Part shown: positions 34,620 to 63,141 of the stretch, piece by piece | Numbering within the stretch: position 1 is the first letter of the stretch | Layout: the number at the start of each line of letters is the position of its first letter | Assembly (NCBI GenBank): GCA_965649765.1 | Contig: OZ287750.1 | Coordinates: 30,132,001 to 30,196,000, forward strand | Reading direction: 5' to 3' | Length of the DNA stretch: 64,000 nt | Source: Bispira polyomma | Lineage: Eukaryota | The notes under the pieces: model-generated | Databases searched by the model: none | Told to the model about the DNA's origin: nothing | The model's input: only the letters and a program-made list of their open reading frames with translations | Translations under genes and position numbers: made by a program

Positions 34620-35480
34620 GTAGGGGAATGTATTCACTCTTGTCACTGTCAACTTCATCACCAGCAGTTTCATCACTCACTTTCGTTACTGCAATTTGTG
34701 CAAGGGATCACTTTCGTCAGCACCATTTTGGTTTGGGTCACTTTGGTCACCACCATTTTGTTAGGGGTCGCTTTGGTCACCACCTCACTTTGGTCACCAC
34801 CATTTTGTTGCGGGTCACTTTGGTCACCACCTAACTTTGGTCACCACCATTTTATTGGGGGGTCACTTTGGTCACCACCTCACTTTGGTCACCATCATTT
34901 TATTGGGGGTCACTTTGGTCACCACTATTTTAGTGGGGGTCACTTTCGTCTCCACCTATTTTTGCAGGGGGTCACTTTGATCACCCATTTTGTTGGGGTT
35001 CCTTTGGTCACCACCATTTTGGTAGGGGTCAATTTGGTCACCACCTCAGTTTGGTCACCACCATTTTATTAAGGGTCACTTTGGTCACCACCTCAGTTTG
35101 GTCACCACCTCGTTATGGTCACCACCATTTTAGTGGAGGCCACTTTGGTCACCACCTCAGTTTGGTCACCACCTCGTTTTGGTCACCACCATTTTAGTGG
35201 AGGTCACTTTGGTCACCACCTCAGTTTGGTCACACCTCACTTTGGTTACCACGTCACTTTGGTCACCACCATTTTGTCGGGGTTACTTTAGTCACCACCA
35301 TTTTGTTGGGGTCACTTTGGTCACCACTATTTTGGTGGGGGTCACTGCGATCACCACCATTTTGGTGGGGGTCACTTTGATCACCACCATTTTAGTGGGG
35401 GTCACTTTCTTCACCACCATTTTTGCAGGCGTCACTTTGGTCACGACCATTTTGGTGGGGTCACTTTCGTCACCATTTAG
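34620..35480 (+). repeat. Minisatellite of 18/30-bp units (GGTCACTTTGGTCACCACCATTTT...), probably the core of a non-autonomous element; shorter relative at 32020-32270
   Basis: Direct reading; both arrays start after the shared leader tcactcttgtcactgtcaactt(c/t)atcaccagcagttt. Confidence 0.9.
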
Positions 35481-45576: not shown

Positions 45577-47665
45577 ATTATTATTATAGATTTTTAACGC
45601 GCTTTATTGATGCTAGGCATCTTCTAAAGCGCAACAGCAGAATCATTAGTCCAATCATTAAGTCCATGGAATTTGCAAAGTCGTAAGGAAGGAAGTGGGA
45701 GCGTGCACGAGGAAAGCTAAGGTGGGTAGGCAAGATTAAAAAGATAGGTTTTAAGCTTTTTCCTAAAACCGATAAGTGTATCAACTGATCTGAGGTCAAC
45801 TGGGAGACTGTTCCATAACCGTGGAGCTGCAGTGGAGAACGCTCTTAAACCTGCCTTTCTGATTGGTCTGACCAAAGTGACAGAGAGTCTGTTGCCTCTC
45901 TTGCGGTTACTGAAGGAAAGAAGGGAGGCAAGGTAGGGTGGCTGTTGAGTGACTACAGCCTTAAAAGTGGTAACGTGAATCTTAAACAAAATTCGAGATT
46001 TAATGGGCAACCAGTGTAATTTTTTGAGGTAAGGAGTGACGTCTGTGCGACAATCCAGGCGAAAAATGACCCTACATAGGTAGTTTTGGATGGACTGGAG
46101 CTTTTTAATGTTTGACTTGTTTGCTTCGTACAAGAGAGAATTGCAGTAGTCGAGGCGGCTACTCACAAGGGCATTTGCCACAGTTATGGCTGTGTCCATG
46201 GACAAGTGGTTTCTGATTCTTTTGATGTCGCGTATGTGGTAATAGCAGGAGCGACAGATGTTGGCAACATGAGTATCGAACGAAAAAGCTGAATCAAAAG
46301 TGACACCCAGGTTTTTAGCATTTTCGGAAGGTAGTATGTCTTTTCCCAGCAGGAAGATGGGAAACAAAGATTTTAGGAGTTCACTGTTTTTCTTGTTTCC
46401 TATGAGGATGAATTCTGTTTTGTCAGGGTTAAGCTTTAGTTTGGAGTAGTTCATCCACGCCTGGACATCAGACAGACAGTCTGCAAGTAGGCCTATGTTA
46501 GTATCTGCGTTTTGTGGATTGAGGGAGAAATAGACTTGAGTGTCGTCTGCATACATGTGGTGTTTTATATTGTGTTTATTGATGACAGTGCTAAGAAGAT
46601 GTGTATAAAGGGTGAAAAGTAGAGGACCAAGGACGGATCCTTGGGGTACTCCATATGGAAGTTTCATGGAAGATGATAGGTGATCATCTAGTTTAATTCT
46701 TTGTGCCCTAAGAGTAAGGTAGGATCTGATCCATTTAAGGACACTGCCATTACTTGAGAGTGTCGCAGAGCAGGACATGATCGATAGTGTCGAATGCAGC
46801 TGAGAGATCCAGAAGGGTGAGGGCCACTGTGTCGTTGCGGTCCAGTGCAAGATTGATATCATTGCTGATTGAAAAAAGGGCACTTTCTGTAGAGTGAAAT
46901 TTTCTATAAGCAGACTGATGGCAATTTTCAATGTTTTGTCTATTAAGGTGGTCAGAAATTTGTTTAGCTACAGCTTTCTCGATGACTTTTGAGACGAAGC
47001 TGAGGTTTGACACCGGTCTGTAGTTTTTGAGCTGGTTTTTATCAAGCCCTTGTTTTTTAATCAAGGGAGTTACGTTTGCCGTGGGAAAAACACCATCCCG
47101 AAGAGAAAAATTTAATATATTTGTTATGGGTGTGACAAGAATGTCAAGACATTGACTCAGTATAACTGCTGGGATGGGATCTAAGTCACAAGATTTAATA
47201 GTAGAGGATTTGATGAGTTTCAGAACTTCAAGCTCTGACAGTGTACTAAAATGAAAAGGTTACAAACCTTATATCCTGGGGCTGGAGGATTGAAGTGATG
47301 TATCGTTGGGAAGGCGTCACGAATGTTGCTGATTTTTTCTATAAAAAATTTTCCAAATTTTTCTGCTAAAAAAGTAAGACAGTGGTTTATGGGGAGAACT
47401 TTCTTTGATGTTCGATGTAGAATTTTGTTTATGGAGGCCCATAACCTTTTGGGATTATCCTGATTTTCGGTGATGATGGAGTCGTAGTGTTGCTTTTTGG
47501 CATCAGTTATTAGCCTGTTGTAATTATTTGTGGCGATACGGTAACGGCTTCTGTCTAAGGAGGATTTTGTGCGTCGCCATTGACGCTCAAGTTGGCGTTT
47601 GTGTCTTTTGGCCTCTGTAATAGCGGCATTGGTCCATTCATGGGTGTTAGTTGGGGGAAGGGTTT
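45577..47665 (-). mobile_element. 5'-truncated, frameshifted L2/CR1-group LINE (reverse transcriptase ORF2)
   Basis: Overlapping ORFs carry RT motifs KNYRPVSNLSFVSKVIEK, LLDLSAAFDTIDH, GVPQGSVLGPLLF, YADD, KLNPDKTE, LHWLP and C-terminal LKTYLFNLAYPP; (TAA)n tail near 45577. Confidence 0.95.
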
Positions 47666-47867
47666 TTGATAGTACATTAACTAGTACATTAACAGTACAT
47701 ATTTGATAGTACATTTTAGTACATTAATTTTTTTTTCATTTGCTAAAGAGTAGATACAAATTGTCGTTGAAAACATGTGATAAATTTCTTGGTCCTTAAT
47801 TTCTTTGAGAAAAAGCTGGGTTATTGAAACAATACTAATGTAGCATTCACACCATCAAGTTCTCAGC

Positions 47868-54799: not shown

Positions 54800-55516
54800 G
54801 GCCCGTATTCACTAAAGTTCTTTTACTTAGAATAATTCTTATACTTAGAAAATTTTCTATTTTAAAAATTTTGTTATTCTTATTCTTAGAATAAAAATTT
54901 TCTTAACTAAGAATTGTGAAAAGCAATACATAAGAATGACAGGGGCCGTATTCACTAAAGTTTTTATACTTAGAATAAGAATTTTTTTGTGTTCACTAAA
55001 GTTCTTATACTTAGAATAATTCTTATACTTAAAATTATTCTTAGAAAAATACTTATACTTAGAATTTTTGCTTATTCTTATAAAGTTTTCTAAGAATGAG
55101 GTTTGATTCTAAGAATGGTCAAGACCTTACTTAAGTTAAGAAAAAAACATAGCATTCTTTGTGCAAGAAAAGCTAAGAAAATTCTTATTCTAAGTATAAG
55201 AATAAAAAATTCTTAGAATAGAAAATTTTCTAAGTATAAGAATGATTCTTATTCTAAGTATAAGAATGATTCTTATTCTAAGTATAAGAATGATTTTTAT
55301 TCTAAGTTTAAGAATTATTCTTATTCTAAGTATAACAACTTTAGTGCATATGGCCCTATGTCTTTTTCTTTACTTAAGTAAAGTCTTGACCATTCTTAGA
55401 ATTAAAGCTCATTCTTAGAAATTTTTCTAAGAATAAGCAAAAATTCTAAGCATAAGAACTTTAGTGAATACCAAAAATTCTTATTCTAAGTATAAGAACT
55501 TTAGTGAATACAGGCC
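54800..55516. mobile_element. Harbinger-like foldback MITE with CTG TSD, containing a second nested or rearranged copy (54943-55356)
   Basis: ctg|ggcccgtattcactaaagttc ... gaactttagtgaatacaggcc|ctg; internal ttcttatacttagaataa repeats in both orientations. Confidence 0.85.
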
Positions 55517-60585: not shown

Positions 60586-63141
60586 ATGATGAAACACAGC
60601 ATTTTTTTCCTTATTTTTGGTTCTTGCATTATTTCGAATTTAGCTGTTGCAAAAGTTTGCAACTCTGTTAATTTAAATGATGAGTTTTTTAAGAAAAACA
60701 AGGATGTAGTGGAGTTGTGTCCGTCTGATCAACATAAAAAAGAAACTAAATTTATGTTTAACGGCCTTGTAACTGATAAAGGATGCAATCCGCTTGAGGG
60801 AGCCGAAGTATTTGTGTGGCAGTCAAATCTGGAGACATATCTTCACGAGACAGAATTGTGTTCAGCACGTGTGCATTCCGATAAGAATGGAGTTGTTCGT
60901 ATTCAGTCCATAGTTCCTAAACAAAGAAATACTCTGTCCGACCAAAAGCCAGGTATACGGTTTGAAATTGTGTACAAAGGACATCAGTTTTTCAAGAATT
61001 TTTATTTCTCGGATGAGAAGAATAAAGTTTTGGAAGATAATGTGATTCACGTAGATAAAGATAAAACCCAAGATGGCACCTTGACTTTTCAATACACATT
61101 TTCCCTGCCGAATGGTGACCTCAGCCGCAGAAGGAGAGACATAGACATGGGTGATTCAGGAGCCAGTTGGTTTGATAAGAAATGGAATGACAACGCCATG
61201 AGCTGGTTAAAGAAGAGAAGTACCGATGCCATTTACGATTGGCCTAAGAGAACACAAGCCTGGCAGGAAGCAGATGTGAAGTGGCTGAAGAAAAGGGACT
61301 GGGATCACTCCGCACTACACTGGCTGAAGAAAAGAGATTCAGGAGACAGTAACTACTGGCCAAAGAGGACATGGAATGATCCAGGGATGTCTTGGATGAA
61401 GAAAAGTGACTGGGATAACACTGGAGACTGGTTGAAAAGAGGCTGGGGCAGTGATATGGCTTGGCTGAAGAAAAGAAGTCCTGATAGTAGTGACCTGCAG
61501 GAAGCTATAAGTCATTTGGACAGTTACCTAAAGGATAGCGTTGCTGGTAACCTCCAGAAGAGGATGTGGGGTGATTCAGGCATGCACTGGATTAAGAAAC
61601 GAGACCTGGAAAGTGTGAACTCTAAACTGGTGGAAAAGCGCTCTGTATTAATGGATAATAAAAATAAAGAAGGCGGTGTGGTTAATGCTGCCCCTATTAA
61701 ACCTAAAAATGACATGAAAGAGAAGAAACTTTGGGATGATAGTGGCATGGCTTGGATTAAGCGGGATAATAGTAAAGGGCAGGAAAAGAAAGGCTGGGCT
61801 AATTCAGGTATGTCTTGGCTTAAGAGGGAAGATAGGGATGATAAGGACAAAAAAAGCTGGAGCGATTCTGGTATGTCTTGGATGAAACGGAAGGGTGGGG
61901 ATCCAAAAGATAAAAAGAGTTGGAGCGATTCGGGTATGTCTTGGATAAAACGGGACGATGGGGATGATAAGGACAAAAAAAGCTGGAGCGATTCTGGTAT
62001 GTCTTGGATGAAACGGGAGGGTGGGGATTCAAAGGATAAAAAGAGTTGGAGCGATTCGGGTATGTCTTGGATAAAACGGGACGATGGGGATAATAAGGAC
62101 AAAAAAAGCTGGAGCGATTCTGGTATGTCTTGGATGAAACGGGATGATGGGGATGATAAGGACAAAAAAAGCTGGAGCGATTCGGGTATGTCTTGGATGA
62201 AACGGGAGGGTGGGGATCCAAAAGATAAAAAAAGCTGGAGCGATTCTGGGATGTCTTGGATGAAACGGGATGATGGGGATGATAAGGACAAAAAAAGCTG
62301 GAGCGATTCGGGTATGTCTTGGATAAAACGGGACGAAGGGGATAAGGACAAAAAAAGCTGGAGCGATTCGGGTATGTCTTGGATGAAACGGGATGATGGG
62401 GATGATAAGGACAAAAAAAGCTGGAGCGATTCGGGTATGTCTTGGATGAAACGGGAGGGTGGGGATCCAAAAGATAAAAAAAGCTGGAGCGATTCGGGTA
62501 TGTCTTGGATGAAACGGGATGATGGGGATGATAAGGACAAAAAAAGCTGGAGCGATTCGGGGATGTCTTGGATGAAACGGCAGGGTGGGGATCAAAAAGA
62601 TAAAAAAAGCTGGAGCGATTCAGGTATGTCTTGGATTAAGAGGGGAAATGAGGATGAGAAAAATAAGAAAAGTTGGGGCGATTCAGGTATGGCTTGGATG
62701 AAGAGGGATCCATTAGATAAAGAGAGTTTAACAGATTCAGGAAAATTATCGATAAAAAAAAGAAGTGGGGAAGCTTTTGATACTAATTCGCTGGCTTGGA
62801 TGAAAAAAAATTGGGGTTCAGGTGACATGCGTTGGATAAAACGAAATCAGAACGCCCAGGGTAGGAGGGCATGGGGTAACGAAATGGCTTGGATGAAGAG
62901 AAACAACCCGAGTAAAAAATCATGGGATGATTCAGGGATGTCTTGGATTAAGAAGAGGGAAGAATTTCCGTTCAAAAAGAGCTGGGGCGATGCTGGGATA
63001 TCCTGGATTAAACGGGGTGATGACCCTATGAACCCAGACAAAAAGAGCTGGGGGGATGCTGGGTTTTCGTGGATTAAAAAGGACGATGGGAAGCTTGACC
63101 GCTCCTCGGTAGGAACTTCTTCTGTAACGGACACTAGGTAA
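60586..63141 (+). CDS. Secreted neuropeptide precursor (851 aa): signal peptide + degenerate intradiol dioxygenase-like domain + ~28 non-amidated W-X5/6-W-[M/I/L] peptides (MIP/Wamide-related, WI-peptide type)
   Basis: Single uninterrupted ORF; hydrophobic N-terminus with AVA|K cleavage at about aa 22; aa 55-143 match the intradiol dioxygenase pattern (GxVxDxxCxPLxGAxVxVWQ...Y...SDxNG...SIVP...YFxD); RRRR at aa 181-184; repeated peptides flanked by KK/KR/KKR with acidic spacers. Confidence 0.93.
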   Translation: MMKHSIFFLIFGSCIISNLAVAKVCNSVNLNDEFFKKNKDVVELCPSDQHKKETKFMFNGLVTDKGCNPLEGAEVFVWQSNLETYLHETELCSARVHSDKNGVVRIQSIVPKQRNTLSDQKPGIRFEIVYKGHQFFKNFYFSDEKNKVLEDNVIHVDKDKTQDGTLTFQYTFSLPNGDLSRRRRDIDMGDSGASWFDKKWNDNAMSWLKKRSTDAIYDWPKRTQAWQEADVKWLKKRDWDHSALHWLKKRDSGDSNYWPKRTWNDPGMSWMKKSDWDNTGDWLKRGWGSDMAWLKKRSPDSSDLQEAISHLDSYLKDSVAGNLQKRMWGDSGMHWIKKRDLESVNSKLVEKRSVLMDNKNKEGGVVNAAPIKPKNDMKEKKLWDDSGMAWIKRDNSKGQEKKGWANSGMSWLKREDRDDKDKKSWSDSGMSWMKRKGGDPKDKKSWSDSGMSWIKRDDGDDKDKKSWSDSGMSWMKREGGDSKDKKSWSDSGMSWIKRDDGDNKDKKSWSDSGMSWMKRDDGDDKDKKSWSDSGMSWMKREGGDPKDKKSWSDSGMSWMKRDDGDDKDKKSWSDSGMSWIKRDEGDKDKKSWSDSGMSWMKRDDGDDKDKKSWSDSGMSWMKREGGDPKDKKSWSDSGMSWMKRDDGDDKDKKSWSDSGMSWMKRQGGDQKDKKSWSDSGMSWIKRGNEDEKNKKSWGDSGMAWMKRDPLDKESLTDSGKLSIKKRSGEAFDTNSLAWMKKNWGSGDMRWIKRNQNAQGRRAWGNEMAWMKRNNPSKKSWDDSGMSWIKKREEFPFKKSWGDAGISWIKRGDDPMNPDKKSWGDAGFSWIKKDDGKLDRSSVGTSSVTDTR
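61826..62640 (+). repeat. Coding tandem repeat, 63-bp unit (one 60-bp unit), 13 copies, encoding spacer-KK-SWSDSGMSW[M/I]-KR
   Basis: Near-identical units aaaaaaagctggagcgattc(t/g)ggtatgtcttggatgaaacgg read directly; 9 copies end in WM and 4 in WI. Confidence 0.97.

Follow-up and report, generated by a model that had tools for sequence, protein, structure and literature searches.

The WI peptides of the annelids Platynereis and Capitella are an offshoot of the MIP/Wamide neuropeptides and end in a non-amidated W[I/L] (Conzelmann et al. 2013, PMC3890597). The defining paper did not recognise an N-terminal domain in the precursors of these peptides, and states that they lack Pfam domains (PMC3890597). 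Here we report on a WI precursor gene in the genome of Bispira polyomma, within a window of 64,000 nucleotides (contig OZ287750.1, positions 30,132,001 to 30,196,000 of the forward strand, assembly GCA_965649765.1), whose N-terminal domain is, by profile comparison and structural modelling, a derivative of the intradiol ring-cleavage dioxygenases, and has almost certainly lost its activity as an iron enzyme. The WI precursor itself has been known since 2013, while its enzyme-derived pro-domain appears to be undescribed.

Folded domains are rare in neuropeptide precursors, the cases being neurophysin, insulin-like and prokineticin/colipase domains. Neurophysin is C-terminal and highly conserved, binds one peptide per domain and is not derived from an enzyme. 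If the WI domain is indeed of microbial origin, it would to our knowledge be the only domain in a neuropeptide precursor that stems from a microbial enzyme. A search of the full-text literature, with subscription papers outside its scope, returned no paper linking neuropeptide precursors with intradiol dioxygenases; the automatic UniRef label on the WI precursor of Ridgeia does state that it contains an intradiol domain. Neuropeptide discovery pipelines deliberately drop precursors with Pfam domains (PMC6425005), and such fusions are therefore systematically missed. Among the enzymes, Streptomyces SACTE_2871 is the representative of a clade of extracellular intradiol dioxygenases that consist of a single domain and in most cases bear a signal (PMC12420386). 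Microbial-type intradiol genes are also present in the animal genomes of tardigrades (PMC5531438) and spider mites, where they were horizontally acquired (PMC9167512; PDB 5VG2, 6BDJ). The mite proteins are secreted, active, multi-copy and detoxifying, whereas the WI domain is encoded by a single-copy gene, is predicted to be dead and lies within a signalling precursor.

The open reading frame of the window gene (60586-63141, plus strand, 851 aa) is uninterrupted by stops and free of N. Judged from sequence, the gene is an ortholog of the annelid WI-peptide precursor, because its peptides match the WI motif and are near-identical to those of Platynereis WI. The preliminary description of this stretch had read the frame as a neuropeptide precursor and had brought up the WI family; the signal peptide (by inspection), globular domain, RRRR site and Trp-rich array that it listed are all there. 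Between its dibasic sites the window precursor holds 28 peptides of the x-W-x6-7-W-[I/L] type, and SWSDSGMSW[M/I] accounts for 13 of the peptides. The Platynereis precursor (KF515919), compared by eye only, has a nearly identical main peptide and an N-terminal region with four cysteines alike; its transcript is present at a low level. A search with the peptide region returned seven further precursors, including those of Paralvinella, Urechis (named WI) and Ridgeia, and a metagenome scan contributed one more complete precursor (L005), the eighth. Metagenome or sequencing-run assemblies are the source of two of these orthologs. The annelid WI precursors (KF515919; Capitella; Urechis QUP51987) have a signal peptide, which in the window gene is judged by inspection, the same cysteine-bearing N-terminus and R-x-x-R site, and the same varied-then-repeated blocks of non-amidated W-x6-W[I/L] peptides, without essential difference from the window gene.

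Peptides of the MIP/allatostatin-B (Wamide) family share the W-x6-7-W motif with WI but are amidated (W-G-K-R), and their precursor has no folded domain. Identity of the window gene with an amidated MIP was rejected, since no Gly precedes the basic pair (0 W-G-KR sites across all nine precursors scanned) and a separate MIP gene exists. The latter, on contig C7 (15613500-15619500, minus strand; L083:1673-3430), encodes numerous amidated W-x6-W-G-K-R peptides in one long open frame, and its N-terminus lacks a folded domain. Elsewhere in the genome, a weak match to the WI peptide profile (C11:8387173-8387400, minus strand, L069; E 3.8e-5) lies within a 3475-codon open frame, and W-G-K-R-type codon runs on the plus strand at C5:37415567-37416108 and C11:2261742-2262543 may be amidated neuropeptide precursors (RGWamide-like) or simple repeats.

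The B. polyomma assembly comprises 1.035 Gb in 75 contigs, and both domain and peptide searches indicate that the WI precursor gene is single-copy. No second Dioxygenase_C match was found in this genome by an exon-by-exon search, nor any standalone dioxygenase by profile searches, although split genes may be missed by both. The fusion lies on a 104-Mb contig amid animal repeats, in frame with animal peptides, and is also seen in Ridgeia, Paralvinella, Urechis and Platynereis. Contamination or a chimeric assembly was rejected, since independent genomes and one cDNA carry the same fusion.

The intradiol ancestry of the domain, proposed in the preliminary description, was borne out by profile and fold searches. 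Taken alone, the window domain matches Pfam PF00775 with E 1.1e-4 and 22.2 bits, under the curated cut-off of 27.3 bits; two WI orthologs pass the Dioxygenase_C cut-off. A profile built from WI domains only gave 28 matches in PDB with E<1, 27 of which are intradiol dioxygenases (best E 2.9e-7), and it aligns with a small rhizobial enzyme at 96.6% probability. Language-model features in the ESM Atlas placed 29 of 30 matches in Dioxygenase_C clusters. An AlphaFold model built from eight WI domains, with no enzyme sequence in the alignment, reached pLDDT 79.8, and the top 50 Foldseek matches of this model were all intradiol enzymes; a single-sequence fold was a poor model (pLDDT 41) and was discarded. 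In a wide structural search, the top nine structures were again all from intradiol enzymes, with Z between 11.3 and 8.8 and alignments of 124-134 residues. The best of them, 4ILV (SACTE_2871, Z 11.3), is tied with the chlorocatechol dioxygenase 2BOY, and therefore structure alone does not settle the subfamily. As a separate observation, the best sequence-profile match, PDB 9YH9, is a phage-encoded small catechol dioxygenase, so the enzyme type is mobile.

The secreted bacterial enzymes offer the closest comparison. Streptomyces SACTE_2871 (4ILV/4ILT) and the rhizobial protein WP_207244972 share with the WI domain its fold, size, putative export signal and the lack of a helical dimerisation domain. 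The closest full-length plasmid matches are small rhizobial enzymes, most of whose relatives from genomes have a twin-Arg leader and two cysteines; these bacterial comparators were reached via the plasmid match and form a biased sample. In the four rhizobial-type proteins aligned, the cysteine pair falls on the same columns as Cys25 and Cys67 of the WI domain. Compared with the secreted enzymes, the WI domain has lost three or all of the four Fe ligands, together with Arg457 and the EGPF loop, has gained a second cysteine pair, and is fused to the peptide array. A scan of the contig collection with the WI-domain alignment gave no match, and domain-only homolog searches returned nothing useful, one of them yielding only large repeat proteins. 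The features of the gene are as follows, in window coordinates.

60586-63141, plus strand: coding sequence of the WI-peptide precursor, single exon, 851 aa, from the open reading frame and orthology with Platynereis WI (KF515919).
60586-60651, plus strand: signal peptide, aa 1-22, with a hydrophobic core and an A-V-A cleavage motif, judged by eye; the Platynereis ortholog has a predicted one at the same place.
60652-61119, plus strand: degenerate intradiol ring-cleavage dioxygenase domain, aa 23-178, a predicted beta-sandwich, from profile and fold searches.
60658-60660, plus strand: Cys25, aligned with the N-terminal Cys of secreted bacterial single-domain intradiol enzymes.
60718-60720, plus strand: Cys45, WI-specific, invariant in the ortholog alignment.
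60784-60786, plus strand: Cys67, aligned with the cysteine of the bacterial C-x-P motif, invariant.
60838-60843, plus strand: Tyr85-Leu86, at the first iron-ligand column (Tyr408 type), with Leu86 there in the ungapped alignment and Tyr85 if one gap is allowed.
60859-60861, plus strand: Cys92, WI-specific and invariant, in place of the Leu of bacterial LRG.
60916-60960, plus strand: former Tyr447/His460/His462 loop, now with Arg114, Gly123 and Arg125 and no iron ligands in the alignments.
61126-61137, plus strand: RRRR furin-type site, aa 181-184, just C-terminal to the domain, from the sequence and ortholog comparison.
61138-63078, plus strand: peptide array of 28 W-x6-W[I/L/M] and four one-Trp peptides, flanked by KK/KR, with acidic spacers.
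61802-62702, plus strand: tandem repeat of 63 nt, 14.3 copies, coding for the near-identical SWSDSGMSW[M/I] block.

Reverse-strand open reading frames across the tandem repeat were rejected as shadows of the coding repeat.

The scaffold motifs quoted in the preliminary description were located at aa 60-79, 92-102, 106-111 and 138-143, and its reading of two of the ligand motifs was upheld: PGxY has become PKQR, with Arg114 at the Tyr447 column, and RPxHIH has become KPGIR, with Gly123 and Arg125 at the His columns. Its view of Tyr85 as the surviving ligand held in part. In the ungapped alignment, probably the correct one, the ligand column holds Leu86, with Tyr85 at the x of GxY, and only a one-residue gap brings Tyr85 back to the ligand column; zero or one ligand thus remains in the window domain, not clearly one. 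Each ortholog keeps at most one of the four Fe(III) ligands, and the survivor varies by lineage, being the first Tyr in Ridgeia, whose domain retains Q-x-D-x-x-G-x-Y, and the second His in P0010, L005 and Platynereis. These differing survivors point to an ancestor that was truly the enzyme and decayed independently afterwards. Among the WI orthologs, no other invariant His, Tyr, Asp or Glu column was found near the iron site. Neither the substrate-positioning Arg (Arg457 type) nor the N-terminal Gly-Pro pocket loop is conserved across WI domains, and L005, P0010 and P0012 have either a shorter Tyr447 loop or none. With the ligand columns lost, the earlier assessment of the domain as catalytically dead is almost certainly correct. 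PcaG, the alpha subunit of protocatechuate 3,4-dioxygenase, is an earlier example of an intradiol fold that lacks iron ligands and has a structural role, and it is among the matches to the WI domain. PcaG stays in a heterodimer with an active beta subunit, whereas no active partner was found in the B. polyomma genome.

The mature domain carries cysteines at positions 25, 45, 67 and 92, as previously noted, and a fifth, Cys14, lies inside the signal peptide. Cys25 may pair with Cys67, and Cys45 with Cys92. Besides the cysteines, the best-kept columns are Gly60, Gly102, Pro69, Pro111, Asp99 and the hydrophobic residues of the strands. The mean pairwise BLOSUM score was -0.37 for 14 ligand and pocket columns and +1.59 for 43 core columns (p ~1e-4, from eight non-independent sequences). 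The domain is recognisable in eight orthologs and in Platynereis, and is eroded in Paralvinella to the point of being barely recognisable (hhalign 4.8%); identity between distant annelid WI domains is about 20%. The ratio of nonsynonymous to synonymous substitution rates (dN/dS) was 0.12-0.22 in the domain (0.15 and 0.22 in the two closest pairs), 0.33-0.49 in the signal and spacer regions and 0.08 in the peptides, all of them rough values with dS near saturation. These ratios indicate that the domain is under purifying selection. An N-terminal region of 110-220 aa is kept in all ten WI precursors seen.

An R-x-x-R site follows the domain in eight of the nine precursors scanned, and also in Platynereis; the WI peptides, by contrast, are bordered by plain dibasic pairs. 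This difference suggests that the domain would be removed early, in the trans-Golgi, and the peptides released later, in granules, an order that draws on general knowledge of prohormone processing. As a side observation, the N-terminal arm of the domain in the Ridgeia WI precursor (P0011) contains, between the first two cysteines at about aa 46-53, a K-R-x-W-L-K-R stretch that looks like a short WI-type peptide.

All non-WI homologs found are microbial, except for the mite enzyme structures, and the WI coding sequence is intronless in every genomic copy retrieved. The microbial-only distribution of homologs (mite enzymes apart), a frame free of introns and the absence of any standalone copy together suggest a horizontal origin of the WI domain. 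A vertically inherited animal enzyme, later lost, could also have been the source of the domain. In the proposed scenario, the gene of a secreted single-domain intradiol dioxygenase of microbial type would have been fused in frame, in an ancestral annelid, to a MIP-like peptide array, and would probably have contributed the signal peptide. The enzyme would then have lost its iron ligands and pocket, retaining the cysteine pair 25/67 and gaining 45/92. Only tentatively do we propose the scenario as a whole, namely that this neuropeptide gene was born early in annelids by fusion of a horizontally acquired secreted dioxygenase to a MIP-like array, and that the dead enzyme is now essential in peptidergic signalling, as a granule-sorting domain, a carrier or a co-released signal.

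As to the present role of the domain, we favour, with moderate confidence, a disulfide-locked structural pro-domain that helps a long unstructured precursor to fold, to leave the endoplasmic reticulum (ER) or to be sorted. It would fold in the ER into a disulfide-locked beta-sandwich and aid the acidic, Trp-rich precursor through quality control and in sorting or packing; the furin-type cut at R-x-x-R would then remove the domain, and PC1/PC2-type convertases would free the peptides at the dibasic sites. Both this folding or sorting role and the order of processing are inferred. Several points weigh against the proposal. No folded pro-domain is involved in the secretion of MIP and most repeat-type precursors, hence there is no general need for a sorting domain. 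The low identity and the barely recognisable Paralvinella domain indicate a loose constraint, and the near-saturated dS leaves the dN/dS ratios rough. As regards the origin, homolog searches of low sensitivity turned up no standalone animal homologs by which vertical descent could be judged.

The two conserved cysteine pairs and the purifying selection would equally suit a stable extracellular protein, which the conserved furin-type site would free whole; the released domain might then itself act outside the cell, as a signal or as a binding protein that has a receptor or partner of its own, the fusion providing co-expression with the WI peptides. We consider this unlikely, since neither the surface nor the pocket showed conserved residues, the best-conserved columns are structural, and loop lengths differ greatly among species. 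If instead the enzyme gene gave only a promoter and a signal peptide, the domain would be a vestigial passenger in which selection just averts misfolding and unpaired cysteines. The low identity fits such a passenger, as do the strong erosion of the Paralvinella and Urechis domains and the conservation of fold-keeping residues only. A clean deletion is nevertheless possible between the signal peptide and the furin site, yet none of the ten precursors has lost the region, and two new invariant cysteines have been acquired; this account is therefore distinctly unlikely. The preliminary description had proposed a neurophysin-like carrier or sorting module, possibly with the old aromatic pocket as the binding site for the Trp peptides or for some small aromatic ligand; as a carrier, the domain would hold them in the granule. 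Neurophysin, in the vasopressin/oxytocin and NG-peptide precursors, is likewise a folded, disulfide-bonded domain cut from the neuropeptide's own precursor (PMC8557429), the ancestry of the WI fold includes an aromatic-binding site, and one chain yields both the domain and the Trp-rich peptides. The comparison fails in several respects: the WI domain is N-terminal, poorly conserved and accompanied by 11-28 peptides rather than one. A carrier would be expected to preserve the site at which it binds a conserved peptide, whereas here the peptide motif is highly conserved and the pocket columns are the least conserved of the domain; Arg457 and the EGPF loop have disappeared, and three orthologs have a reduced Tyr447 loop. 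Binding of peptides through the old pocket is thus improbable. The remark in the same description that dioxygenase-like N-termini had been noted in WI precursors was not confirmed by the papers searched and disagrees with the defining paper.

Two further possibilities concern the nature of the domain. The lone ligands that survive in Ridgeia and, as the second His, in P0010, L005 and Platynereis might mark a metal-dependent enzyme that still works via rearranged ligands; with no more than one ligand per ortholog, a different one from lineage to lineage, and no invariant candidate column nearby, this is very improbable. Weak CarboxypepD_reg and Ole e 1 matches in several orthologs, together with structural matches to other transthyretin-like folds (Z 6.8-8.2), would fit a generic transthyretin-like sandwich, of the TTR-52 or carboxypeptidase regulatory type, whose likeness to dioxygenases reflects only the fold shared within the clan. 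The transthyretin-like matches span about 80-100 residues, against the longer intradiol alignments that fill the top nine places; two orthologs exceed the Dioxygenase_C cut-off, and Ridgeia retains the Q-x-D-x-x-G-x-Y signature. The wide structural search largely refutes this reading, whose probability we regard as negligible.

The structural pro-domain that we favour would be a lineage-restricted invention with a proposed function. Given a horizontal origin, a microbial catabolic enzyme would have been recruited as a pseudoenzyme into nervous or endocrine signalling and kept across distant annelids. The fusion also offers a route by which the orphan WI gene may have split from MIP.

The surroundings of the gene contain several repetitive elements. 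Fragments of a LINE-type retroelement occupy positions 45717-47714 of the window on the minus strand and include a 404-aa open reading frame with a reverse transcriptase (RVT_1, E 2.6e-18); a similar LINE-type fragment lies about 3.9 kb beyond the window end (L084:5870-6199). An AT-rich foldback-like element at 55000-55510 has 107-nt inverted arms, 90% complementary, with 24-nt tandem repeats inside. Finally, a compound minisatellite with a 17/30/47-nt unit extends over positions 34700-35475, and the 162-aa open reading frame that overlies it is probably spurious.

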